Sequence record: NC_048779.1
Strand: one strand, 5' to 3'
DNA: 64,000 nt
In this document: positions 7,331 to 24,535 of the stretch, piece after piece
Layout: every line of letters starts with the position of its first letter
Numbering within the stretch: the stretch's first letter is position 1
Program-made: the position numbers and the translations under genes
The notes under the pieces: model-generated
The model's input: only the letters and a program-made list of their open reading frames with translations
The model's database searches: none
What the model was told of the DNA's origin: nothing

Positions 7331-7807
7331 TTAATTCTGACCTTCTGATAAAATTGGTTTTTCTATCGGCACTGTGTACAAACAACAATTGTAGAAAAAC
7401 TGTTGTCGACCCAATTCATCATAAACAGGTTGCTCGTCCTTCAACACGGGCCTGCGTACTCGTTTGAATTTAAACTCAAACGTAGGGACACGAGAACTCA
7501 ATAAAAGTTGTCCCAGACTCACACGCTTAGTACTCCCTCCTAGGGTGATACTAGGTCGGCTGGTATCAGCGGGATAGACCAATGCGGTCAAATCCCCTTC
7601 TTCATTGTAAATGAAGTTGGTTAGTTTTAATACCGCATGTTGAGGGTTGATTCGATCATCCAGAGGCTCTCCGTATTCAACTAATAAGAAACGTTTTTTC
7701 TCTGGTCTCTTCTTTAAGGTGCGTAGTAGTTTGGTGACGCTTAGATCTATTTGGTCTTTACGAAAAATAGTAAGTCGACGACGATTAACAATATTGACAG
7801 AACTCAT
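7331..7807 (-). CDS. Hypothetical protein (~158 aa; start revised to MSSVNIV)
   Basis: The ORF-track start at 7924 overlaps the upstream gene by 92 nt; ATG at 7807 has SD AGGAG. Confidence 0.7.
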   Translation of the reverse strand: MSSVNIVNRRRLTIFRKDQIDLSVTKLLRTLKKRPEKKRFLLVEYGEPLDDRINPQHAVLKLTNFIYNEEGDLTALVYPADTSRPSITLGGSTKRVSLGQLLLSSRVPTFEFKFKRVRRPVLKDEQPVYDELGRQQFFYNCCLYTVPIEKPILSEGQN

Positions 7808-7832
7808 AACTCTCCTAATAAAAAGAAGGGGA

Positions 7833-8489
7833 TTACTCCCCTTTATTTTGTTTGTCTTCCGCTTCTTTTGCTGAGGTGCGTAATTCACCTTCTGCATTAG
7901 TGAAGTCGAATAGACTATTAGCAAGATGATGGTTCACAGCAGTGCGGGTAGTTGCTAGATCATAGCGCTCACGGACACTCAAACCGGTTCCAGCGACGGA
8001 ATCATAGAAATGAGTAGTACGGGCTACGTTTTTGTCTTCCTGCTGTTCTAGTTGCAATAAGCCGTGCATTTGACGACGGTAGTAGATGTTGTCTTCACCC
8101 ACACCCGTACACCATTCACTGAACTCACCTTCCCAACCACTTAGTTCTCCTTCTTTGTAAAGGTCCATCACGCCCGGCATCGCCATGATGTAATCACGCA
8201 TGAATCCTTGAGAAGCTTGTAACATTTCCATTGAAGTCGCGACACCAATATCGTAGTAACCGATGTAGTGATCTTCGGCATTACCACGAATACGGCTCGC
8301 TAAATCCCAAGCTCGGGTGTTAACAAAGTTCTTAAAGGAATCCATAAAGTTAGAAGCACCTTCTCCTAACCAACCGCCTACGTTTTGAACCTGTTCAAAG
8401 TTCATCTGGATCATGTTCGCATAAGACTGCATTTGGTTGTCATGCACGATCCCCGATGTACCCATAGAGAAAGCTCGACACGTATTCAT
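7833..8489 (-). CDS. Conserved hypothetical protein, 218 aa
   Basis: Start overlaps the stop of RNAP exon 2 (translational coupling). Confidence 0.8.
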   Translation of the reverse strand: MNTCRAFSMGTSGIVHDNQMQSYANMIQMNFEQVQNVGGWLGEGASNFMDSFKNFVNTRAWDLASRIRGNAEDHYIGYYDIGVATSMEMLQASQGFMRDYIMAMPGVMDLYKEGELSGWEGEFSEWCTGVGEDNIYYRRQMHGLLQLEQQEDKNVARTTHFYDSVAGTGLSVRERYDLATTRTAVNHHLANSLFDFTNAEGELRTSAKEAEDKQNKGE

Positions 8490-8668: not shown

Positions 8669-10076
8669 CGCATACATTGTTACACCCGTTAGGATGCTTT
8701 TTATTCGCCCTTCAGGAAAATACTAAGTAGTTGTAGATTTTGCCCAATCTATCAACTCTTCCCTTTGCTCTTTAGTGATTGTTTCTAGGTAATAGAACTT
8801 CCAACCATCAACCACTTTGGTTACACCACGCTTTAATGCTGTTGTAACCATCTTTTTACTTAAATCGTGTGTTGTTCTAAATTCATAAGCTGACTCAAAA
8901 AGGATTATTGTTTCACCTTCTTTGGCAGCTAACACTTTCTTAGGAGCACGAGATAACAACTTCTGTTTTAACTCATCAGTCAAAAAGTCAAAGTTATTTG
9001 TACTCTCTATTAGAACGTAGTGTTTTTGGAACAACTTTGGAAAGTCGCTGGTAGAAATACATTGCGAGACGGTCTGTGACCTACACTTGAAGTGTTCAGA
9101 AACCGCTTTCATAGTTGGAAACTGTTTGACTTCACCGGTAAAAAGATCCATGCATGATATCTCTCTACGGTAGGTCTGTTGCTCCCTTTCATGTCTTCTT
9201 AATTTCTGGACGCGTTTATCCGACGATTTAAGATGTTCTACTTTCCAGCCGTTTAACAACAACCCCTCTTTAATACTTTTCCAAACTTCAGCTATTTCGC
9301 ATGAGAAGAATTCGCACGCATGAAGGAAGTTGTTCAAGTACTTTGTTTCATCATCTTTGGTTATAACGATGAGTGGTCGTTTAGTATAACGATTTAAAAG
9401 TGTCGCATGAACGTTGTTTTGTTCCGGTGTTACCCAATCTACATTAGTAGACTCATTGTTTGTTATGTCTCCATCTATGTGGTTCCCATGTTGATTTTCC
9501 TCAGGCTCACCATGAAAGGTTGTTAATATGAGCCTGTGGACCCCTTTGGTGGTAAAAGTGCCATCAGGTAGCACCACCATAGTTGTTATGTATCCGTCAC
9601 CGTTGGTGTAGTATTCAACCTCTGTTTTATCAGGGTTGTAAATCCGTCCATCTTCAGTGGCGTAATAACCTTTAGTGTTAGGTATTTCTTTCATATTCAA
9701 CTTTTTTTGAAGGACTACGGGTCGTTACTCCGCTGAATAACCGGGCAAGGTCATTCTCCGATGCTTTCACACCGGGCGAGACTATATCTTAGCTTCATCA
9801 TTCCTTGAATCCACTCTTCCTGTTCGAGGAGACTTCTCCCCACCTAGTCGTTGAACGTTACTCTACGTGAGAGTCTTCGCTGCTGATTTCCGATTGATAA
9901 GAGCCCTTAGCACTCCACACTTATCCTTGGTGAAGTTGGTTTTCCATTAAGCTTAGGTCATCTCTATTTTTATTTCTGACTTTCGTCCACATTCATAGTC
10001 GATCACTCAACTATTGTAGTAAATAGAGCTTTACGGGGTTCCAGCAATTAAAGAAGTTTAAAGACGGCAATAGTTC
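8669..10076 (-). mobile_element. Group I intron, 1408 nt, in the RNAP catalytic motif
   Basis: P1 pairs exon GACGGU with intron GCCGUC with a U-G wobble at the splice site. Core elements: P AATTGCTGGAAC (10038-10049), Q AATCAGCAG (9880-9888), R GTTCAACGACTA (9845-9856), S AAGATATAGTCT (9779-9790). Ends in G. Confidence 0.92.
8723..9700 (-). CDS. Intron-encoded HNH homing endonuclease with C-terminal DNA-binding repeats, 325 aa
   Basis: GYYATEDGRIY (NUMOD4-like), KGVHRLILTTF...GNHIDGDITNN...NVDWVTPEQNNVHA (HNH); lies 3' of the intron catalytic core. Confidence 0.9.
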   Translation of the reverse strand: MNMKEIPNTKGYYATEDGRIYNPDKTEVEYYTNGDGYITTMVVLPDGTFTTKGVHRLILTTFHGEPEENQHGNHIDGDITNNESTNVDWVTPEQNNVHATLLNRYTKRPLIVITKDDETKYLNNFLHACEFFSCEIAEVWKSIKEGLLLNGWKVEHLKSSDKRVQKLRRHEREQQTYRREISCMDLFTGEVKQFPTMKAVSEHFKCRSQTVSQCISTSDFPKLFQKHYVLIESTNNFDFLTDELKQKLLSRAPKKVLAAKEGETIILFESAYEFRTTHDLSKKMVTTALKRGVTKVVDGWKFYYLETITKEQREELIDWAKSTTT

Positions 10077-11498
10077 ACCGTCGAAATCAGCGTTAAAATT
10101 GGACACAGACAGTATTGGGAGTCCAATAGATTGGTCTCCCAGATCTCGTTTAATTCGCGCAAAGAAAGTGCGACGAGACAAATACTGAATGGATGGCATA
10201 CGACCTGCTTTACACACGATGTCATTGCGTTCTTCATGGTAAGTGAAGAAAGCGTCGATATCGGGGTCGAGGTAGTGGGCAGCTTTACTGATCTTGGTCA
10301 GCGCAGCCATCGGTGAGTAACCTTTACGATACAAATGGGACAGTATCTGTTTCTCTAACTGGGCGAGCGCCATTATCCATGGAACTTCTATCATTCCCGG
10401 ATTATGTATCCCCGTCTTAGAGGTGATTACTGAACGACCTGTCATCGGTAAAGAGCCAGACGCCACCAGTTTACGCGCCGCTCCCGGTTTAGGGAACATG
10501 AAGTCCTTTAAATGGGCTGAGTTTTGTGCCGCTAACGCCACTATCCCCTTACCAACACGATCAATGGATTCTTGGATATCGAATTCATTGACTTGGTATA
10601 GGTCAGTGTTATCTTTAGTATCAGCGATGGACATGTAAGTTGAATCCATCTTTAGCTGACTTGAAGAAGCGTAACGTTCTTTACCCGCCTTTTCAATAAC
10701 GGTAGAGAGTTTATTAGGTATCGGGAGATACTTAGTGAAAACAATATCCTTGTAATCAAAGTAACCCAACATAATCTCTTTAGCATCGGAATTCTTAAGT
10801 GCTGTTAAAGTTCGACCTTCACCTAACAAAAAGTAATCCATGATGGTATCAGCATTAACAACAAACTCGTTGAGATCGAAACGAGTCATCAGACGTTTTA
10901 AATGAGATTGGAGATCACGGAGTTTTTCCGAACTTTGTGAATTGACCTTACGACGATAGGTTGGATCGATGATGTAAGTGATGATCTCTATCTTAGGTGA
11001 AGCTGTTGCGATCTTTTGCAAGTATGTCTTGTAGAACGCAGGGTTGATGAATGATTGGACACCAGTAGGTAGGCGTAACCAAACTTTGGTCGATAACTCA
11101 GTATCAACTAAGCGCTCCACTTGGTTACCACAGTTTCTACAAACCCGTCCAGAACCAATTAAATGGTTTCCCTTTAAAGGTTTATCACAACCACACGACG
11201 CGATGGTTTCAAAAGTGTCCGTATCAAAGTCCACACGAATCAGCTTCTCCAAACGTTCACGATCTTCTTCTAAACAGAAGTCGTAGTCGTTCAGATAAAC
11301 AGGTTGCGACTTAGATGTATCATGGGCGTAATTGAAATCACGGAAGTCTGGATAAAGCGGAGCGTAGTAACTAGGATCGTCGAAGAATTTCTTCCCGGAT
11401 TGTTCCTGATAACGCTGGAACTGTTTGATAGGAAGCAAATCGTCAAAAGATTCCTTTGCTAATACCTCTACTGCAATATCTTTCGTTGGAGACGACAT
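10077..11498 (-). CDS. Exon 1 of nvRNAP beta' N-terminal subunit (phiKZ gp55-like), 474 aa; spliced product 533 aa
   Basis: Zn-binding CGC...CRNC; KAGRMPSIQ motif; ends NFNADFDG; directly downstream of chimallin as in phiKZ. Confidence 0.92.
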
Positions 11499-11592: not shown

Positions 11593-13659
11593 TTATGAGT
11601 AAACAATACCAGAAGCATTGCCCACGATACCGCCACCGTTAACCATGTAAGCACCAGAAGCACCTGCTGCCGCGTTTACTGCGTATTCAACAGATGGTGC
11701 GTAGATTGCAACGTTAGATGCAAACGTACCCATAGTACCAGACGCATTTAGGTTACCAAGCTTGTCTAGACATTGACCTAGGAATTCTGCAAACTCTGGT
11801 GCCACGTAGTGACGACGTGAAGTACCAGTGATGTTTACATCATCGTTGATCAGTGTAGGAAGCATAGTAGTCATGCGGTAGCGACGTACTGGCTCTGGAG
11901 TTTGGTTACCATCACCGTACACTGCTTGTAGGTACTGAATCATTGGAGTAGTGTCAGTTGGGCATAGACGGCTTAGGAAGATTTCATCCACTTCTTCTAG
12001 TGAGTGAAGTTCACCGTTGTGCTTAAACGTACCTACTGGATTCAGGATACCAGATTGACATAGAACTGCTTTCTCTGGAGTCCAACCTTTACCAGTTTGT
12101 TTGTTCTCTGAGATGCGACGAGACGCTTCACCGTTAGTGATAGAATCGATCACTTTAACGATTACTAGTTTGTTTTCAGTAGCAGCTTCAGTAGTGCCTA
12201 CAAGGTTAAGTAGGAAGTTGTGAAGTGCTGCTTCGTTACCGAATTCAACTAGGTCGATAGCGTAAGATGCGCGCTCAGCGATGTTACGACGGATCCAAGA
12301 ACTTGTGAAGTCCATGTCTTTTAGACGGGCTTCAGTCATTTTCAGTTTCTCGTCACGCTTACCTAGCGCACCACCAATCATGTCTTCGATACGACGCTCG
12401 ATGTGAGACAGGTTACCACGTGCACCAATCTTAGCCAAGCGTAGAGGCTCAGTAAATAGGTGGTTGTGGTTCACAGTCATGTTCGCGTACAGACCCATTA
12501 GGAATGATGCGATACCTGAGTTGTTACCCATCTGTGCTTGAGCACGAGTATGGTTCATAACTACAACTGCTTGAAGCGGGTGGTAGCCATGAGGGTACAT
12601 ATCGTTCGAGTTCATCATTGGAGAGAACATCGGTTGGATTTGACGGTTCGCCATTTGCGCTGTGTAAACAGCGAACGGAACACCAACCAACAGTACGTTA
12701 GAGTAAGCGTTAACAATACCGCGAGCAGCATCAGCGTTGTATTGCTGACCTTCTTTTGGTGCTGTTTGCAGCTGAACTAACATGTTAGCGCCAGACGGAA
12801 CGCCGTCGATGCTTACTGGAGTACCAGATTGATTTTTCATCGCTTCGATACGCGCAGTCGCACATTTAGTTGGACCGTACGCATTTTCGTCGATTTGACC
12901 TTTAGCGTTGATGAATGGAGTTTTCAGCGTTACACCATGCTTAACCATTGTTTTGGTTAGCGTAGTTTTCATGCCGCGTTCCCACTCTTCAAGGATAACG
13001 TTCGCCAGTAGGTCAGCCATACCAATCTCTTTGTTTTCTGGAGTTTGGTAAGACTCTAGGTCGATAACGCGAGACGTGATAAGTTGAACGTCGTTTACAC
13101 CGTCGTTAGCGTAACGAAGTTTCATTGATTCGATTAGGTTACGAACCACTTCTTTACTCATGTAACGGTTTGGTGTTTGTTTGATTTGCACCTTCGCCGG
13201 CATGTTTTGACCCATCACACCGTTAGTGTGAATTTCTTCCAGCTGGATAGCGATCTCGCGGTTAGAGAACTGCACTGGAGCAATGATCATTGCATTACCT
13301 ACGCGACGAGCTAGGATGATACCCGGTAATACTGGAGACAGGTTAGTGTCCATCAGGATTACTTCTTGAGGGATGATTTGCTGTAGCGCAGGGTTGATAG
13401 AAGATTTGTCTTTCTCTTCACGGAAGTCATTCAACTTCTTAACAATCTCGTTCACAACAGGAACGCTACGACCGCCAGACATCATTGAGTTCATACCTAG
13501 AACGTTAGCGAAATCTAGTAGTGAGTTGGTTTTGTTAGATGACATTTTTTCTGCTCCTTGTTGTGCAGTTTGATTTTTGGTTGGTTGTTGGGTTTGTGGG
13601 TTGTTAGAAGATTGATCATTCTCTTCGATTTCATCCCAGCTATTTTTGCTTGAGATCAT
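11593..13659 (-). CDS. chmA: Chimallin, major phage nuclear shell protein (688 aa, or 650 aa from ATG 13545)
   Basis: Size, strongly biased high-expression codon usage, and position immediately upstream of nvRNAP beta' and divergent from a gp53-like gene, as in phiKZ gp54. Confidence 0.85.
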   Translation of the reverse strand: MISSKNSWDEIEENDQSSNNPQTQQPTKNQTAQQGAEKMSSNKTNSLLDFANVLGMNSMMSGGRSVPVVNEIVKKLNDFREEKDKSSINPALQQIIPQEVILMDTNLSPVLPGIILARRVGNAMIIAPVQFSNREIAIQLEEIHTNGVMGQNMPAKVQIKQTPNRYMSKEVVRNLIESMKLRYANDGVNDVQLITSRVIDLESYQTPENKEIGMADLLANVILEEWERGMKTTLTKTMVKHGVTLKTPFINAKGQIDENAYGPTKCATARIEAMKNQSGTPVSIDGVPSGANMLVQLQTAPKEGQQYNADAARGIVNAYSNVLLVGVPFAVYTAQMANRQIQPMFSPMMNSNDMYPHGYHPLQAVVVMNHTRAQAQMGNNSGIASFLMGLYANMTVNHNHLFTEPLRLAKIGARGNLSHIERRIEDMIGGALGKRDEKLKMTEARLKDMDFTSSWIRRNIAERASYAIDLVEFGNEAALHNFLLNLVGTTEAATENKLVIVKVIDSITNGEASRRISENKQTGKGWTPEKAVLCQSGILNPVGTFKHNGELHSLEEVDEIFLSRLCPTDTTPMIQYLQAVYGDGNQTPEPVRRYRMTTMLPTLINDDVNITGTSRRHYVAPEFAEFLGQCLDKLGNLNASGTMGTFASNVAIYAPSVEYAVNAAAGASGAYMVNGGGIVGNASGIVYS

Positions 13660-15023: not shown

Positions 15024-17096
15024 TTAGTGTTCGTCACTAATCAGTCGTGTTATCTTCTCATTCACAATAAAGAGACCTAGGGACTCTAATACTGCGTAAA
15101 CACATTTAAGGTTTTGTTTAATGATAGCACGGATGTCTGCGGCTTGTATAACTTCCTTAGGGATCCCCTCAGAACCTAAACATTCTTCGGGAACGTAAAG
15201 GGTCGTCAGTTTACTGGTATCACTAAGGTGAGTTTCCGCTTTCTTTTTAATCTCTACAGGTAGTGAATCTAACCAGCTTTGGATAGAAGCACGGTTGAGA
15301 GTCTTAGCATTTACTTTAATGGCAGTGTACGGTAATTCCGGAGCATGTCCGTATTGTTCAGCAAAGATTTTCTCCCACAGTACATGATACTGGTAAACAG
15401 ACGATTCAGGTTTAGAATAAACTTCTGCATCTTTAATCGTAGACTTTGTCAACCACAACCAATCCCCACGTTCTATATCCGCAATGATTTGTCGTTCGAG
15501 TTCTGCCGCACGATACAAAATGTCAGCAGCATCCAGTTGACGGTGTTCATGGATGGCGTCTAATACTTCACGCATCAGTTTGTGTGCAAAGGACTTAATG
15601 TTGGCAGCGATTTTGGCAGAGCGTAAATGCACGCCTTTAATCTCCATCTCAACTTCTTTGTTCATCACCCCTTCTACCATCAACTGTGTCGCATAGTAGT
15701 GCTTCGACATCGTTGTAGTAACGTACGCTCCGAACAAATATTCGTTCTTCATGTTTAGGCGGTAACGGAAGCGATGAGCCACATTCATGTTCTCAGAGAA
15801 CTGTGCGTGTTGGTGAACGGCGATCATACGAATGAAATAGGTCAGTACACCGTTAGTGCGAAGTGAGGTCGCACGGTCTTTGGTGTATTGATCTACAACC
15901 GTATCCACCGTGTAGATAGAAGAATCCGTATCAGAAGTCAACACTACTTCACGAATCATATCTTTGATGTTGTAAACACCAGATGGTGGAATTTCTTGCT
16001 TAAGGAATATTTCAATGAAATCAAACCACTTTTGCTCACACTCTAAGTGCCAAGCATTAAGGTGGTTGATTTGAAGTTTACTCGCTTTACCGACAATCTT
16101 TGAAACACAAAGGATGTATCGGTCACCCGTATCTGGTTTAGGGTAATCTTCAGCTTTAGCACCTTCCGGTATTTCTGGTACTTTAGAGAAGTCATCAAGT
16201 AACTCGTATAACGTTTTCTGGTTCGTGACACGAAGACCTTCTAAGTCTAACACACATAGTACAGCGGTTAATTCCACCGGACGGAAAGTGTTGATCAACT
16301 CTTCGATGGTCTGCATACGAACTGCATTACGCCAGTAACGACCTGTAGAGTGACGAATCATGTTCATCACTTCTTCTACAGTCGCGTGACGCATCCCTAA
16401 CTTATCCATCACTTTCTGCATGCGTTCAAGGTCGGTGTATTGGACCGTCGCAATGATGTTTTGTAAGGTGTTTTCAAAAGTGTTATAGAGTCGGTTACCT
16501 GCAAGGAATTTTTCGTTACAGATGTTAGCTGTGGACGTGAGACCACGACATGTTGACGTCATCGAAGTGTGACCGGACTTATTAACTAGCGGCGTACCAT
16601 TAGACGACATCGCACCAGACTGAGCGTTGTTAAAGATCTTCAGTGCGTTCTGGATAACGTCGTAGGTTTTCTCTGCCCACTTATCACCACTATCTTTGGC
16701 GTCTTGTCGTTTGTTTTTGTACAACTTACGAAGTTTAAGGAAACGCTCCGTACCGATGGAGTTAACGGATTGTTCTTCTTCTGAGTTCTTGTATCCCACT
16801 AGTGATGGACTTAAGTGGTAGTTGTTACTGTGTACGTTTTTAAAGAACTCACTGGCGGTCATGACTTTAAGTTCACGGTCGCCGTATTTATTTTTCTCCA
16901 AGACTTTAAACTTACGGTCTTGATATTCCCCAGTATTAGGTCGGAATTTTTTCTTAACAATTTGGGCTGCTTGCTCAGCGGTCACCTTAAATCGTTTTTG
17001 TAAGTAGGTGATCATCTGATCGTGATAATGCTTCACGATGTTTCTATCAGAATGATAATCCGCGTCCACAAAAGGAGACAACATCGGCTGTATCAT
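15024..17096 (-). CDS. Family B DNA polymerase subunit (phiKZ gp50-like), 690 aa
   Basis: SDTDSSIY catalytic motif, KxxxNxxxG-type KIFNNAQSG, KNEY, KHYYA, EMEIKGV. Confidence 0.88.
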   Translation of the reverse strand: MIQPMLSPFVDADYHSDRNIVKHYHDQMITYLQKRFKVTAEQAAQIVKKKFRPNTGEYQDRKFKVLEKNKYGDRELKVMTASEFFKNVHSNNYHLSPSLVGYKNSEEEQSVNSIGTERFLKLRKLYKNKRQDAKDSGDKWAEKTYDVIQNALKIFNNAQSGAMSSNGTPLVNKSGHTSMTSTCRGLTSTANICNEKFLAGNRLYNTFENTLQNIIATVQYTDLERMQKVMDKLGMRHATVEEVMNMIRHSTGRYWRNAVRMQTIEELINTFRPVELTAVLCVLDLEGLRVTNQKTLYELLDDFSKVPEIPEGAKAEDYPKPDTGDRYILCVSKIVGKASKLQINHLNAWHLECEQKWFDFIEIFLKQEIPPSGVYNIKDMIREVVLTSDTDSSIYTVDTVVDQYTKDRATSLRTNGVLTYFIRMIAVHQHAQFSENMNVAHRFRYRLNMKNEYLFGAYVTTTMSKHYYATQLMVEGVMNKEVEMEIKGVHLRSAKIAANIKSFAHKLMREVLDAIHEHRQLDAADILYRAAELERQIIADIERGDWLWLTKSTIKDAEVYSKPESSVYQYHVLWEKIFAEQYGHAPELPYTAIKVNAKTLNRASIQSWLDSLPVEIKKKAETHLSDTSKLTTLYVPEECLGSEGIPKEVIQAADIRAIIKQNLKCVYAVLESLGLFIVNEKITRLISDEH

Positions 17097-20414: not shown

Positions 20415-21380
20415 TTACCAGACCATCCCGGAATTGTCAGAGCCCTCTGTGAGGTCCTTAGAACGGGACTTAGTGAATTGGGTCTGACGTTCTACCGCTT
20501 TTTCTTTAGAACGCTCCATATCATTGATGATCTGTTCTGTTAGGCTATCGTACTCAAGCATCATGTGTAGTTCACCTGTATCGTTAGGAGTGATCGCATC
20601 TGGATGCATTACGCCCGTCACACGATACCCTTTACCGATTTGAACGGAACGGATGTCGTTACGAGAGCTGTATAGAGAGAAACTCGCTACCGCACTACCT
20701 TGACGTTTATCGATAGTCAGACCATCATAGAACTCAATACGAGTAAGAGATGGTGGGATATCGACCGCGCTAGAGTAATCCAACAAATGACGGATGTCCT
20801 CGTAGTCTGACTCTTCGTGTTTATCCGTTAAGAACAGCGATAGTAGGTTGAGACGCTCAACAGCGATTTTGTTTAACTCACCACGAGTTAAAGCTTCGTC
20901 GTTTTGTAACACATCCATTACGACCGGCATATCAAAATGCTTACGCTGACCATCCAGAGAACGCAGAGTCGCAATCGTGTTGTCCAGTTCGATGTCCGTG
21001 GTTTGATCGATCACGAGGAACGAAACTACCGGAATACCTGCTTCCATAAGGGCACGAACTAGGAAAGGACCAATGGTAGAACCTGACGCACCCGCACCAC
21101 TGTAAATCACAACGTTGAAATCCCCCGCTTTATGTTTCACCAACATTTGGTTAACAAAATCAGGAATGAGATCACGATTCAAAGTACGCTTCTTACCACC
21201 ACCGCGAGTGTTCGGTGGACACTCTAAAATGAACGAGTCATCATCCGGTTTATTGTTGGTAGACGTATCTAAACCGATGAACTCTACTTTAGAGATAGGA
21301 AGGTTTCTTAACGACTTCTTCCATGCAGAACCGATGTTAATACCCGCACCACCAATACACCATGCACGTAATGTAGACAT
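20415..21380 (-). CDS. phuZ: PhuZ phage tubulin, 321 aa
   Basis: CIGGAGINIG, GLDTS, RGGGKKR, SGAGASGSTIG tubulin/FtsZ GTPase loops; Chimalliviridae context. Confidence 0.93.
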   Translation of the reverse strand: MSTLRAWCIGGAGINIGSAWKKSLRNLPISKVEFIGLDTSTNNKPDDDSFILECPPNTRGGGKKRTLNRDLIPDFVNQMLVKHKAGDFNVVIYSGAGASGSTIGPFLVRALMEAGIPVVSFLVIDQTTDIELDNTIATLRSLDGQRKHFDMPVVMDVLQNDEALTRGELNKIAVERLNLLSLFLTDKHEESDYEDIRHLLDYSSAVDIPPSLTRIEFYDGLTIDKRQGSAVASFSLYSSRNDIRSVQIGKGYRVTGVMHPDAITPNDTGELHMMLEYDSLTEQIINDMERSKEKAVERQTQFTKSRSKDLTEGSDNSGMVW

Positions 21381-21421
21381 ATTAAACTCCTTTAAAGTTT
21401 AGTTAAAAATATTTAAAATGC

Positions 21422-21851
21422 AAAAAAGCACCATCCCCTTCGCCGGGGATGGTCAAAGCAGTGGAACTCAGTGCCAATACTGAAATTACCCGAACTGGAT
21501 TCTTACGCGGTCGAAGAACCCAGCCGGCTAGCCTCGGCTTAGCATCCCTTGGTGGAGTGTAGGAGCTGAGGAAACACTCTCCATTTTTAAAGCGGTCAGG
21601 GGTGTACCGCTGTGGACGCTGAGTTAAAGGCTCAAGCGTCCTACGAACAAAAGTAGTGGCTTCTGTCCGAATAGGGTGGTTCAGGGGATGGCTTTAGTGA
21701 CATCGATGTTGACAAGGAGGACTCCCCCCTGAACCAGAATAGTTGTGAGCGGTTGTAATGAAGGAATAACTTCCTAGGTCGGACTCGCGGCATACACCTT
21801 TTCTTTTCGGACACGCTAGTCTAGCTAAACCTAATCTTGTACCGCTCACAT
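21422..21851 (-). ncRNA. Putative ~430-nt structured ncRNA of unassigned family
   Basis: No ORF >=60 aa. Perfect helices 21841-21850/21744-21753 (10 bp) and 21677-21687/21726-21736 (11 bp); 8-bp crossing pair 21806-21813/21664-21671; several more hairpins; promoter-like motif at the 5' end and terminator at the 3' end. Confidence 0.7.
21430..21453 (-). terminator. Terminator closing the structured element
   Basis: ACCATCCCC/GGGGATGGT stem followed by GCTTTTTTG. Confidence 0.8.
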
Positions 21852-21859
21852 ATAATGTA
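21848..21859 (-). promoter_or_regulatory. Promoter-like motif TACATTATATGT at the 5' end of the structured element
   Basis: Near-identical motifs at 25611-25622 and 30194-30205; resembles phiKZ early TATATTAC and contains the late TATG start motif. Confidence 0.6.
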
Positions 21860-21878
21860 CCTTGGGTTAGGAATTAAT

Positions 21879-22580
21879 TTAAAGACGGGTGTGTTGTTGA
21901 TAACGTTTAGGTCCCATTCCATATTTTTTCTCGAACTTCACTACGAAGTAACTAAAGTCGAGGAAGCCTAACTCCTCAGCGAGTTGACGCACCGACTTAT
22001 AGTAATTAGGTAGCTTGGCATGCGCTTGATTTAAACGCAAGTCTAATACGAATTGTTTCAACCCAAATCCATAGTGATGATTGATAATCAACTCTATTTC
22101 TTGGTGGGTTAAACGGAATCGGTCCGAGAGGGTCTGGATACTTAAACCGGTATCTTTGTAATGTTTCTTGACATGATCTAACAAAAACGTCTGACGTTGC
22201 ACCGTTAACTTGGGATGGGATTTAAACAAACCCCAAGCTAAATCACTGGTCTTCGGTCGGTTGCGATAATTTAAAGGGTACGTGCCAAATTGCTTAATGA
22301 AATTTTCTCTCAGCGTTTTATGATTAGTGTACCCAATTGCTCTGGCGATAGAGGTTAGGTTAAGATCTGTGTCGTCTAAGAGTTTCTTCGCTTCTAACAT
22401 TTTTAAATGGGTGATGTAATCATACAAACTCCCTTCACCTGCATCACGGAATAGTTTAATGACTCTAGTGGGTGAGATCCCTGTTTTCTTTAAAACTAAT
22501 TCCGAAGCATTAGGTTCCAAACAATATTTCTTAGCCGCATTTTTGAGCTTCTTGAACTCTCTGGAATTCTTATCAGACAC
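21879..22580 (-). CDS. Tandem double AraC/XylS HTH-domain protein, 233 aa
   Basis: ...AKKLLDDTDLNLTSIARAIGYTNHKTLRENFIKQFGTYPLNYR and ...SVRQLAEELGFLDFSYFVVKFEKKYGMGPKRY; no effector domain. Confidence 0.88.
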   Translation of the reverse strand: MSDKNSREFKKLKNAAKKYCLEPNASELVLKKTGISPTRVIKLFRDAGEGSLYDYITHLKMLEAKKLLDDTDLNLTSIARAIGYTNHKTLRENFIKQFGTYPLNYRNRPKTSDLAWGLFKSHPKLTVQRQTFLLDHVKKHYKDTGLSIQTLSDRFRLTHQEIELIINHHYGFGLKQFVLDLRLNQAHAKLPNYYKSVRQLAEELGFLDFSYFVVKFEKKYGMGPKRYQQHTRL

Positions 22581-23298
22581 AAGCGCCTCTCAAAGTTTCC
22601 CGGAGTTCAACGATATTAACCCCGTAGACTTCTTGGTATTGCTTCCGTAAATAGGTCGCACTACAAGAACCTACAGTAGTCGCCAAGTCTGTAATCTTAA
22701 TACTTGGATTTTTGTGGAGTAACTCCTTAGCTAATTTCATCCTAGTATCCTTTCTCCATTCACGATAGGTTTTACCGTAATAGTGTTCAAACATTTCACT
22801 TAAGCTACGATCTGGTAAACCAAACTTCTTTTCTACATCGGCGTAATTGAAATTGACTTTGATGTTTTTAAGTAGGTAATTCAATATCTTCTCACGCAAC
22901 TCATTAGGATAATATCGGTCCATAGTTTCTTTAGAATAAGAATCCATGGTCGGAACCTCGAGGGAATCCGTGTAATCTTCACGAGGGTGTCGTTTAAAGT
23001 AAGCCTTGTACTCTTTGGTAAAAGATTGGAAGTGAGAATACCCAACGTGGGCTCCAGCTAGTGTAGGTCTGATGCCCGATTCTAGCAAAGCTTTGGCTTT
23101 AACTAAGCGTTTACGTCGAAGATACTCACCCGGGGTGGTATTACGTTGTTCAGCAAACAAACGGTAGACATCCGGGATAAACACACCTAGTTGATGACTT
23201 AAGTCTTTGACCGTGACTTTTTCTAGGTAGTGTTCATTTATCCATTTGTCCAGATCTTCCATTAAACGAATTCTGGATTCTTTATCTACAGGGTACAT
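22573..23298 (-). CDS. Tandem double AraC/XylS HTH-domain protein, 241 aa
   Basis: TTPGEYLRRKRLVKAKALLES...VGYSHFQSFTKEYK and RMKLAKELLHKNPSIKITDLATTVG...YQEVYGV. Confidence 0.88.
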   Translation of the reverse strand: MYPVDKESRIRLMEDLDKWINEHYLEKVTVKDLSHQLGVFIPDVYRLFAEQRNTTPGEYLRRKRLVKAKALLESGIRPTLAGAHVGYSHFQSFTKEYKAYFKRHPREDYTDSLEVPTMDSYSKETMDRYYPNELREKILNYLLKNIKVNFNYADVEKKFGLPDRSLSEMFEHYYGKTYREWRKDTRMKLAKELLHKNPSIKITDLATTVGSCSATYLRKQYQEVYGVNIVELRETLRGACV

Positions 23299-24464
23299 AA
23301 TTCAGTTTCCTTTATTTTACCCAGACGGATATCGTCTTCTCTAATACATAAGTCGGCGTTAGTTTTAACAAAGCGAACAAACTGCTTGGTTTTGTTACGA
23401 CGAGTAAGTGGACCTTTATGTTTACGGATCTCCGCAGGAGTCAGTCCGTAGTTAGCCATTAAGTGTCTTCTGATGTCGTATTCATAATCCGAACCAACCT
23501 TCCTTAAGATCTTAGAAAACTTCCAACGAGTGTTTTGTAAAAAGTACACCACTATTTCCAATCGGATGAATAAGCGCGCCTTACTAGGTAACATGCCTGT
23601 GTAAAGAGTAAACATTCTTTCCCAAGAAGAAGTGTTTACTCCGTAAAATTCTCTCAGCTCAGTTAAGTGGGGACGATTTTCAAGCAGGTTTTCGGTAACG
23701 TTATCCACTATCTCTTCCATGAGGGAAGGGAGTATCCAGACGTTTTCACCATGGACTTTGGCCCACATACCGATAGATTTTGATTCACCAAATTCACTGG
23801 TAGTCATACCGTACTTTGCTTTAAAAGCTTTATTAAGTCCAGTAGGGGCGTTGTAGATGGTCATTTCCAGTAAACGGGTTTCTTTATACCCGTGAGTTTT
23901 GATTTGCTCGGCAACGTACTCTAGTTGCTTATTTAACAAATAAGCCCTAGGAGTTACTCCGTGTAGTTCAATGAATTTCTGTCTAATGTAAGTGGTGGTG
24001 TAAACACTGTCGTTTATTAATACATTGACGTCTTTGTATAAGTACGGATTAAGGTCGATCTTTTCAACGATGGAGCTGATAACCGCATCGACTACACCTA
24101 AACTCGGTCTTTTTGATTTTAACCCCATGCGCGCACGGACCTTAGTAGGGCGCTCTCCAAAAACGGATAAATACCAAACGTAAAAGTTTGATGTTTTATC
24201 ATACCCTAAGGTTTTAGCGATTTCTTCTAGTGAAAGTTCACCGTCAGAGACTAAACGCTTAGCTAAATCCTTACGTAACTCTTTCAAGTGATGTGTAGGG
24301 GTTTCTAAACCTTGATTTAGAAAACGCACAGTCAATACATCTGGGGCGATGTTTTGCATTTTTGCAATGTCGACGAATTTACGTTTTTCTTTATAATGCG
24401 CATTAATGTTCGCTATTGTGGTCAAAACGATTTCATCGTCGATTCCTAGTGTATCTATGGACAT
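23286..24464 (-). CDS. Triple AraC/XylS HTH-domain protein, 392 aa
   Basis: Three ~100-aa units ending FGERPTKVR, YGMTTSEF and YGLTPAEIR; first unit has LSLEEIAKTLGY. Confidence 0.82.
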   Translation of the reverse strand: MSIDTLGIDDEIVLTTIANINAHYKEKRKFVDIAKMQNIAPDVLTVRFLNQGLETPTHHLKELRKDLAKRLVSDGELSLEEIAKTLGYDKTSNFYVWYLSVFGERPTKVRARMGLKSKRPSLGVVDAVISSIVEKIDLNPYLYKDVNVLINDSVYTTTYIRQKFIELHGVTPRAYLLNKQLEYVAEQIKTHGYKETRLLEMTIYNAPTGLNKAFKAKYGMTTSEFGESKSIGMWAKVHGENVWILPSLMEEIVDNVTENLLENRPHLTELREFYGVNTSSWERMFTLYTGMLPSKARLFIRLEIVVYFLQNTRWKFSKILRKVGSDYEYDIRRHLMANYGLTPAEIRKHKGPLTRRNKTKQFVRFVKTNADLCIREDDIRLGKIKETELCTL

Positions 24465-24501
24465 AATAAATCCTTTAATGAATATTTAACAAACAACAAT
24501 A

Positions 24502-24529
24502 ATCCTGCTTGCTGAAGAGCAAGCAGGAT
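24502..24529 (-). terminator. Hairpin terminator upstream of the AraC operon
   Basis: ATCCTGCTTGCT/AGCAAGCAGGAT 12-bp stem. Confidence 0.75.
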
Positions 24530-24535
24530 ACTGGT

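Follow-up and report, generated by a model that had tools for sequence, protein, structure and literature searches.

Three AraC-type genes and a structured non-coding RNA lie side by side directly upstream of phuZ in Vibrio phage USC-1 (Aphroditevirus, a nucleus-forming jumbo phage). The question raised by this locus is whether the proteins cooperate with the RNA in one regulatory system or whether they are neighbours with separate roles. We analysed a stretch of 64,000 nt of record NC_048779.1, referred to as the window. A first-pass annotation of this DNA had described a terminator, three coupled AraC genes, a promoter motif about 20 nt after the last AraC stop codon, a structured RNA, a second terminator and phuZ, with no terminator between the AraC operon and the RNA. 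From this order it had proposed a possible self-contained regulatory system attached to the nucleus/spindle core block. The anatomy was confirmed in our analysis, whereas the interpretation as a regulatory module was supported in part and a functional link of the cassette to phuZ was not supported. On balance, we lean towards a clade-specific cassette of two adjacent transcription units, physically nested and probably functionally separate. The first would be a translationally coupled operon of proteins built solely from AraC/MarA-type modules, the second an independent gene encoding a structured RNA (about 430 nt) under its own phiKZ-type TATG promoter.

Anatomy of the locus and the AraC proteins

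All genes of the locus are located on the minus strand and follow each other in the order given above. The features are as follows:

24502–24529, minus strand: upstream intrinsic terminator with a 12-bp stem (6 GC pairs), which ends the unit of a 259-aa gene and bounds the AraC operon
24465–24501, minus strand: short, AT-rich AraC1 leader (TTAAATATT ... TTAAAGGA ribosome-binding site), a possible promoter
23286–24464, minus strand: AraC1, 392 aa, with three MarA-like DNA-binding modules in tandem (residues about 11–112, 122–229 and 246–348) and a C-terminal helix; pI 9.3
22573–23298, minus strand: AraC2, 241 aa, with two AraC-type DNA-binding modules in tandem; the first 13 nt overlap the end of AraC1; pI 9.2
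21879–22580, minus strand: AraC3, 233 aa, with two AraC-type DNA-binding modules in tandem; the first 8 nt overlap the end of AraC2; pI 9.8
21849–21875, minus strand: promoter-like element of the RNA gene, with TAAC at 21869–21866, ATTATATG at 21856–21849 and the predicted start at G21849
21422–21849, minus strand: structured non-coding RNA of about 428 nt, defined by fold and covariation; no Rfam match and no conserved ORF
21849–21841/21753–21745, minus strand: RNA helix P1, which encloses a branched 5' arm
21736–21723/21689–21678, minus strand: RNA hairpin after P1
21676–21673/21549–21546, minus strand: closing helix of the central RNA junction with three hairpins
21544–21512/21505–21472, minus strand: long, conserved 3' hairpin of the RNA, followed by the terminator
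21422–21453, minus strand: intrinsic terminator that ends the RNA and, by default, the AraC operon too (stem 21453–21430, T-run 21427–21422)
21381–21421, minus strand: phuZ upstream region (TTTTAAATATTTTTAAC ... AAAGGAG), almost invariant among Aphroditevirus lineages
20415–21380, minus strand: phuZ, tubulin-like spindle protein, named 'tubulin PhuZ' in RefSeq

All three AraC proteins matched Pfam HTH_18 in two to three stretches each (1e-26 to 1e-28, 93–99 bits, cut-off 33.6), and together they contain 3+2+2 = seven modules with 14 helix-turn-helix motifs. A Pfam/NCBIfam search revealed no domain besides HTH_18 in these proteins, and none of the three reached an NCBIfam equivalog threshold. 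The AlphaFold model of AraC1 (mean pLDDT 84) showed three seven-helix MarA-like modules, and the best Foldseek matches of this protein were single DNA-binding domains, namely MarA (1bl0), SoxS (7w5w) and AraC (2k9s), with TM scores of 0.7–0.8 by target. For AraC3, sequence matches in the PDB were SoxS and the C-terminal domain of YesN. AraC2 and AraC3 are distant paralogues with 20% identity across both modules. Given HTH_18 scores above the gathering threshold and the MarA-like module fold of the AraC1 model, AraC1–3 belong to the AraC/XylS family. The N-terminal sensing or dimerisation domain of classical AraC/XylS proteins is absent according to Pfam, NCBIfam and AlphaFold, as the DNA-binding modules fill the whole length.

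MarA, SoxS and Rob are activators of this family that work via the DNA-binding domain alone. AraC1–3 share with them the bipartite helix-turn-helix module of about 100 aa, have no ligand-binding domain, as is the case for MarA and SoxS, and are basic. However, MarA and SoxS possess one module per polypeptide, whereas the phage operon encodes three proteins with two or three modules in tandem each, which sets AraC1–3 apart from the single-module type. The setting differs as well, since the phage proteins occur in a phage with its own RNA polymerases and with its DNA enclosed in a protein shell. Their basic character (pI 9.2–9.8) and their fold suggest that AraC1–3 bind double-stranded DNA sequence-specifically and may act as transcription factors or DNA-architectural proteins, on either phage or host DNA. 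In the upstream DNA, the AraC1 leader resembles the phuZ upstream region (repeat families D3/D4), and TTAAATATT is found in intergenic DNA at these two sites only. Besides this likeness, a search for operators or centromere repeats yielded only short two-copy families.

The structured RNA, its promoter motif and its terminators

The first-pass annotation had recognised a structured RNA downstream of AraC3, and both folding and comparison of relatives bear this out. The sense strand between 21880 and 21420 folds at z = -5.0 relative to shuffled sequences. In a full-length alignment of five sequences, compensatory changes were detected in 20 of 125 predicted pairs. The 3' domain showed them in 11 of 22 pairs; here 99.6% of the cells were paired compared to 26–50% when the partners were slid, and none of 500 column shuffles reached the observed covariation. 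One G.U pair is invariant, which on the opposite strand would correspond to a C-A mismatch. The length of the RNA varies from 339 to 574 nt among relatives, with large indels between lineages. No match to any of the 4227 families of Rfam 15 was obtained for the USC-1 RNA, even at permissive thresholds (the best hit, E 0.22, was a fragment of a eukaryotic lncRNA), and the loci of five other versions gave no match at E <= 0.1. Membership in a known family was accordingly rejected for all six versions, as were a tRNA and a tmRNA, and a small ORF inside the RNA common to the lineages was not found. In a search for transcript evidence, no RNA run could be shown to contain the locus; four runs, which correspond to low-depth metagenome contigs, displayed even coverage and no transcript ends.

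The motif ATTATATG begins 22 nt after the AraC3 stop codon (21881–21879), in line with the distance noted in the first pass. Exact copies of it occur four times in the 64 kb; all four are on the coding strand and lie in the non-coding 11.6% of the window, and none of the other three adjoins AraC genes. The TATG ahead of the RNA is invariant in eight of eight lineages. In phiKZ, the non-virion RNA polymerase uses the late promoter motif TATG and transcribes from its G, and middle promoters carry AAanTTACc near -24 (PMC4666361). Similarly, the USC-1 RNA is preceded by TATG, directly ahead of its first helix, with TAAC between -20 and -17. Both the spacing and the longer motif ATTATATG are peculiar to the USC-1 group, and, unlike the late TATG promoters of phiKZ, the motif is located here ahead of a non-coding RNA and not of a structural gene. 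In at least five of the eight lineages P1 starts at the predicted +1, which is the G of TATG, with a different sequence each time, and the RNA therefore appears to be a stand-alone gene. Its transcription by the non-virion RNA polymerase of the phage is predicted from the phiKZ-type promoter motif; the timing of its expression is likewise a prediction.

The upstream terminator lies between the 259-aa gene and AraC1, and its position is kept in nine relatives with stems that are wholly different in sequence yet complementary. The terminator of the RNA is conserved in all lineages. The sequence of its stem (CCATC...GATGG) is unusually well conserved, and six of nine stem pairs show compensatory changes. 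Between AraC3 and the RNA, our scan detected a single candidate terminator (21978–21959), which is weak (7 pairs, 3 GC) and located inside the AraC3 reading frame, in agreement with the earlier statement that no terminator lies between the operon and the RNA. Without a terminator at this site, the RNA would form the 3' end of the operon transcript. Transcripts of the AraC operon would thus be expected to run through the RNA and to stop at its terminator. Consequently, the RNA may arise in two forms, one at the 3' end of the AraC mRNA and one as a transcript of its own.

A comparable arrangement is known for small RNAs of the DapZ/MicL type, which use a promoter of their own close to the 3' end of the upstream gene and share the terminator of that gene; for USC-1 both elements are predicted. 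In contrast to these RNAs of roughly 80–300 nt, the phage RNA comprises 340–570 nt with a conserved multi-domain architecture, and the USC-1 RNA showed no seed-like complementarity to neighbouring mRNAs. Large structured phage-associated RNAs such as GOLLD and ROOL are represented in Rfam. The USC-1 RNA is also phage-encoded, conserved and strongly structured, but it matches no Rfam family. Chimalliviruses express non-coding RNAs, and small RNAs have been mapped in phiKZ and 201phi2-1. The screen in 201phi2-1 retained units of <250 bp only and mostly yielded RNAs derived from 5' UTRs, whereas the USC-1 RNA has about 430 nt.

Distribution among relatives and competing explanations

Co-occurrence of the AraC genes and the RNA across relatives had been suggested as a check, with independent distribution counting against a common system. 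We ran this comparison and never saw the two apart. AraC genes adjoin the RNA in every lineage with a contig spanning both, that is in three Aphroditevirus lineages, L037, three Tidunavirus genomes and L041; L223 was left out, as its contig stops before the AraC position. In the uncultured relative L041 a single AraC gene instead of three is present and a 303-aa gene is inserted upstream, with the RNA still adjacent. This adjacency persists at 22–30% protein identity between lineages. The nearest outgroups, namely Miami (L034, for which the covariance-model search covered the 13-kb phuZ locus), L225/L226 and L227/L228, have neither element at the syntenic site. Additional lineages were not recovered. 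An RNA-first search of viral and metagenome collections (15-mer and gapped pattern) gave about 195 loci among the matches listed, and the covariance model rejected all of them as chance hits except the known isolates, which had been recovered by the 15-mer. Likewise, blastn with the pTD1 and L041 versions of the RNA revealed no new lineages, and scans that started from PhuZ gave nothing new in viral and genome collections.

PhuZ itself scored below the 33-bit gathering threshold of Pfam Tubulin (6e-07, 30.3 bits); its homologues match Pfam TubZ_C_2, and a homologue is present in 191 phage records. The proposed attachment of the cassette to the nucleus/spindle core block holds by position, as chimallin, the DNA polymerase and phuZ are its neighbours, but not beyond that. 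The Tidunavirus genomes have lost phuZ and retain the AraC genes and the RNA, and therefore phuZ is a neighbour of the cassette and no required part of it.

The lineages are collinear over the whole stretch bounded by the 259-aa gene and the DNA polymerase, and thus the adjacency of AraC genes and RNA requires no special explanation. Their co-distribution amounts to one gain or loss event in a collinear block; it permits a module and does not separate coupling from inherited synteny. Moreover, in silico tests for a link between the two (pairing of the RNA to neighbouring starts, repeated binding sites and anti-Shine-Dalgarno motifs) were all negative. As to antisense control, when duplex energies of the RNA were ranked for the start regions of 43 genes, phuZ came 42nd and AraC1 39th, and the invariant RNA loop GCCUUUAAC did not single out these two genes among the 43 start regions either. 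CCUCC/CUCCU occurs in every version of the RNA, with no enrichment over shuffled sequences (P 0.03–0.7), and anti-Shine-Dalgarno mimicry was rejected. Counting against separate units is that the AraC genes and the RNA were never found apart and are both gone from the outgroups, which a functional unit would explain equally well.

Such a unit would be a regulatory module in which the AraC-array proteins activate or repress the RNA promoter or bind the RNA as a ribonucleoprotein. Bacterial AraC-family regulators often control an adjacent gene, and here the promoter motif of the RNA lies directly downstream of the regulator genes. The strict adjacency has outlasted the loss of phuZ, a change in AraC copy number from three to one, the insertion in L041 and extensive protein divergence, and joint absence was observed in Miami-like and L226-like phages. 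In addition, TATG is needed yet insufficient in phiKZ and the promoter complexes are unstable (PMC4666361), which leaves room for accessory factors. However, the distribution represents a single event with no independent replication, and direct signs of binding or regulation were not seen. No repeated operator-like motif was found near the RNA promoter, where the region 40–70 nt upstream, the usual site of an activator, is AraC3 coding sequence. The remaining three ATTATATG sites of the window are situated away from AraC genes, and with its own conserved promoter motif the RNA should not depend on read-through from the operon. To our knowledge, RNA binding has been described for no AraC-family protein. 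Taken together, we regard a common module as rather unlikely. About as unlikely is its bolder version, in which the RNA has the multi-module AraC proteins as its dedicated partners, be it as promoter specificity factors or as protein subunits, in a circuit unique to this clade, and the RNA represents a new large structured phage class.

The same features bear on three further explanations. Since no terminator separates AraC3 from the RNA, which makes the RNA the 3' end of the operon, and since its terminator ends only about 40 nt ahead of the phuZ start, the RNA might act in cis, as a structured 3' UTR stabilising or controlling the AraC mRNA or as a leader or attenuator for phuZ. We consider this improbable in view of its own conserved promoter motif with P1 from +1, of the strong terminator, behind which the phuZ upstream region is conserved separately, and of Tidunavirus, where the RNA is kept without phuZ and another gene follows after about 140 nt. 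A segregation unit comparable to TubZRC, with the HTH proteins as adaptors, the non-coding stretch as centromere and PhuZ as tubulin motor, is disfavoured and would be very surprising. Its appeal lies in the gene order, which the locus shares with type III partition systems (tubC-tubR-tubZ, that is DNA-binding proteins, a non-coding region and a TubZ-family tubulin), and in PhuZ being a relative of TubZ. Nevertheless, the non-coding stretch contains no iterated direct repeats as in a centromere, only short two-copy families, and its conservation is RNA-like with compensatory changes and the invariant G.U. The cassette is also independent of PhuZ; it survives in phages lacking this protein and is absent from outgroups that encode it. 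Finally, in USC-1 RefSeq lists a CDS of 114 nt on the opposite strand, and ORFs of 51–57 codons exist on the sense strand, which could indicate a small-protein gene, or else a non-functional spacer that folds by accident. Hardly any weight can be given to this reading, the least probable of all, as the lineages share no ORF and differ by large indels (339–574 nt) and none of the 500 column shuffles reproduced the covariation. Two adjacent units thus remain our preferred explanation.

Implications for nucleus-forming jumbo phages

Nucleus-forming jumbo phages transcribe their genes with their own polymerases, and few non-coding RNAs have been noted in them. Besides gp68, a sigma-like subunit of the phiKZ non-virion polymerase, a review of these phages describes no accessory transcription factors. 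Proteins consisting solely of stacked AraC DNA-binding modules are an architecture that we did not find described for phage regulators in the literature consulted. The RNA of 340–570 nt combines a structure backed by covariation with a phiKZ-type promoter motif and belongs to no Rfam family. The phages that carry it are cultivable, and their relatives phiKT1019 and phiKT1028 have been investigated as nucleus-forming phages; antisense oligomers have been used on such phages (PMC12571901). Should AraC proteins and RNA be unlinked, the RNA alone would still be a clean candidate for a new class of structured RNA. Should they cooperate, the AraC proteins would be a first candidate for a transcription factor that is encoded by a phage and acts with these phage polymerases.

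Layout of the AraC operon, the RNA gene and phuZ

Over the 500 nt that separate AraC3 from phuZ, the window matches both USC-1 (NC_048779, Aphroditevirus, Gorgonvirinae) and Vibrio phage 5 TSL-2019 at 100% identity. RefSeq annotates the locus as three 'transcriptional regulators', followed by a gap whose sole entry is an opposite-strand 'hypothetical protein' of 114 nt, and by 'tubulin PhuZ'. The first-pass annotation had described a terminator, an AraC trio, a promoter motif, a structured RNA, a second terminator and phuZ, and every one of these elements was found in the window. All genes treated here lie on the minus strand. Since a DNA polymerase gene and a chimallin homologue are located near phuZ, the AraC/RNA locus adjoins genes for replication, nucleus and spindle in this nucleus-forming jumbo phage.

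Features of the locus and its surroundings
24529-24502, minus strand, upstream terminator-like hairpin; same position in nine relatives, stems differ with complementarity kept
24464-23286, 23298-22573 and 22580-21879, minus strand, AraC1, AraC2 and AraC3
21856-21849, minus strand, ATTATATG, promoter-like motif before the RNA; starts 22 nt past the AraC3 stop
21849 to about 21422, minus strand, structured RNA
21453-21430 plus T-run, minus strand, strong RNA terminator, preceding phuZ
21380-20415, minus strand, phuZ
13869, 25619 and 30202, minus strand, other exact ATTATATG sites; intergenic, TAAC 9-10 nt upstream in two of three
15024-17096, minus strand, divergent family B DNA polymerase
11593-13659, minus strand, 688-aa protein homologous to a related contig's ORF with the Pfam chimallin family

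The AraC reading frames overlap by 13 nt (AraC1/AraC2) and 8 nt (AraC2/AraC3). A pattern scan from AraC3 to the RNA yielded no credible terminator, which bears out the earlier claim of a terminator-free stretch; the sole match (21978-21959) is weak and lies within the AraC3 reading frame. The RNA terminator stem CCATC...GATGG (21430-21453) is recognisable in all lineages and the terminator before AraC1 is wholly turned over; the hairpin of the RNA terminator may have a role besides termination. Elsewhere in the window, positions 9758-10086 (minus strand) match the Rfam group I intron family RF00028 at 54.8 bits, which exceeds its gathering score. They adjoin an ORF (8723-9700, minus strand) whose product has an HNH_3 endonuclease domain, and the two probably represent a gene-interrupting intron with its own homing endonuclease.

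The structured RNA and its predicted start

Identity of the gap is 95% with Aphrodite1, 84% with PDCC-1 and 2 TSL-2019 and 74% with phiKT1019. Its sense-strand fold has a z of -5.0, and double changes in the alignment preserve helices at 20 of 125 predicted pairs. Further homologues come from Tidunavirus (pTD1, VP4B, phiKT1028) and from uncultured phages (contigs L033, L037, L038, L041 and L223). The versions are 339-574 nt long. A covariance model built on the 3' hairpin and terminator scored 85-126 bits for twelve full-length versions and 46 bits for L223. In the 3'-domain alignment 99.6% of the cells are paired, with compensatory change in 11 of 22 pairs; none of 500 shuffles matched the observed covariation, and slid partners were 26-50% paired. 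Moreover, one pair is invariantly G.U and a second position mostly so. Both would be mismatches on the opposite strand, and the constraint therefore acts on the sense-strand RNA and not on DNA. Distribution and covariation rest on about six or seven independent lineages, and the RNA-first searches covered exact patterns and the retrieved loci. None of six versions of the RNA matched an Rfam family, no tRNA or tmRNA was detected, and our literature searches retrieved no description of it.

A segment of about 141 nt is missing in USC-1 and Aphrodite1 (window ~21745-21737 versus ~6150-6290 of the relative L003). It is kept by all longer versions, where it contains a covarying hairpin as well as the conserved GUAUAAAGYGCA motif, and appears dispensable. 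The hairpin loop GCCUUUAAC (21623-21631) is invariant in five aligned Aphroditevirus-group sequences on a covarying stem, which suggests a tertiary contact or binding site; comparison with neighbouring start regions did not single these out. The RefSeq gene HWC35_gp140 ('hypothetical protein', 114 nt; 21449-21562, plus strand) lies antisense inside the RNA gene. The annotations of Aphrodite1, PDCC-1 and 2 TSL-2019 contain no counterpart, and a search for a shared antisense ORF gave none; the gene was probably called in error.

The 64 kb contain four exact copies of ATTATATG, each of them on the coding strand and between genes (intergenic sequence makes up 11.6% of the window), and one-mismatch matches are below expectation overall. 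TAAC lies 9-10 nt upstream of three of the four copies. The three other sites precede untranslated leaders of 200-360 nt and then ordinary genes. The phiKZ non-virion RNA polymerase requires TATG and starts at its G, and phiKZ middle promoters additionally carry AAanTTACc near -24 (PMC4666361); the putative RNA promoter is similar to the phiKZ middle and late motifs. TATG before the RNA is invariant (8/8 lineages), and in at least five of the eight the first RNA helix starts at its G, with the partner at ~95-105 and quite different sequences. This is good indirect evidence for a predicted 5' end at G21849, which would make the RNA a gene of its own.

AraC proteins and their co-distribution with the RNA

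By domain and fold, AraC1-3 belong to the AraC/XylS family. Their Pfam matches comprise HTH_18 and HTH_AraC only, in two to three separate stretches each, and NCBIfam gave sub-threshold matches to C-terminal parts of many AraC regulators. AraC1, modelled with AlphaFold (mean pLDDT 84), has three seven-helix modules in a row as well as a short beta-hairpin and a helix at the C terminus; in Foldseek each module resembles isolated AraC-type DNA-binding domains (MarA, SoxS, AraC; TM 0.7-0.8 by target). AraC2, alignable to modules 2-3 of AraC1, and AraC3 contain two modules apiece and, at 20% identity, are distantly paralogous. In total, therefore, the operon codes for seven MarA-like modules with no sensing domain. 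Classical AraC/XylS proteins combine a sensor with one module and the MarA/SoxS form is a single module, whereas the phage proteins stack two to three. All three are basic (pI 9.2-9.8).

Among 1.84 billion representative proteins, a profile search identified seven full-length relatives only, and those that could be placed all come from the phage group of USC-1 or uncultured kin. By tblastn no homologue was found in other isolated GenBank jumbo phages; the remaining matches were short and fell in one Enterococcus phage and in small contigs of gut phages. An earlier comparative review had pointed out 'AraC-like HTH' activators for this jumbo-phage group (PMC7824862). AraC identity across relatives is 22-30%, compared with 42-61% for the 259-aa protein, 44% for PhuZ and 72-86% for DNA polymerase (L025 and L041 compared). 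Judged by sequence identity, the AraC proteins are diverging much faster than their neighbours (42-86%).

The RNA directly follows the last AraC gene in every lineage with a contig spanning the site. The Tidunavirus phages phiKT1028, pTD1 and VP4B (L024, L025, L026; ~7700-8400) keep the trio and the RNA and have no phuZ at all, an absence described as a recent loss (PMC11724907); there, a homologue of the 97-aa gene follows about 140 nt after the RNA terminator. In L041 (71 kb, chimallin present), phuZ and a 339-nt RNA accompany a single AraC1-like gene of 23% identity. Selecting relatives by PhuZ instead of AraC added L223, L225/L226 and L227/L228. L223 (PhuZ identity 58%) has the RNA and stops short of the AraC position; an AraC1-like protein (P0009) derives from SRR24755503, a sample that also contains contig L224, whose PhuZ is identical to that of L223. 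In the outgroups, scanned around phuZ only, L225/L226 (PhuZ 45%), L227/L228 (40%) and phage Miami (41%) have neither AraC genes nor the RNA 3' domain at the phuZ site. AraC genes and RNA are therefore jointly present or jointly absent, the reverse of the independent distribution that the first-pass annotation had set against its proposed module. However, all carriers are collinear between the 259-aa gene and DNA polymerase. The pattern amounts to one gain or loss event and fits function and inheritance alike.

Upstream of phuZ, Klebsiella phage Miami (L034 4491-5870) and, similarly, L226 and L227 contain roughly 1 kb that is GC-rich and poor in ORFs (fold z of -3.3), together with a strong terminator and a conserved ORF of 62-67 aa. 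AraC genes are absent there and the RNA model finds no match; another non-coding RNA may occupy the same place. L034 4738-4790 gave a weak, sub-threshold hammerhead type III match.

Relationship between the AraC operon and the RNA

None of the direct in-silico tests of an AraC-RNA link was positive. No operator-like or iteron-like repeats were found in the locus; its only notable repeat is the likeness of the regions upstream of AraC1 and phuZ, which points to a shared type of promoter or ribosome site. Complementarity of the RNA to the start regions of 43 genes revealed no preference (phuZ 42nd, AraC1 39th), and CCUCC-type loops are not enriched in it. Public reads were uninformative on transcripts. 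On balance, we favour two nested, separate units, one an AraC-array operon whose products would bind double-stranded DNA and the other an RNA gene transcribed from its own putative phage-polymerase promoter. Both would share one terminator, so that the RNA would double as the 3' end of the operon.

A coupled module, in which the AraC proteins regulate or bind the RNA or its locus, is the more interesting reading; its AraC-RNA link is hypothetical, and we regard it as rather unlikely. A purely cis-acting RNA, either a 3' UTR or a phuZ leader, is less probable still, because the RNA has a conserved promoter motif and is kept in Tidunavirus, where phuZ is absent. We give very little credence to a TubZRC-like partition unit, as repeats are absent, the covariation is strand-specific and the cassette is independent of PhuZ. 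That the gap is coding or an accidental stretch is hardly conceivable, since the covariation contradicts it and no ORF common to the lineages was found within the RNA.

The proposed layout of two nested units resembles that of sRNAs made from their own promoter at the 3' end of a gene, but the phage RNA has several domains and is much larger. The locus is of moderate interest, carried mainly by the RNA and the unusual AraC proteins.
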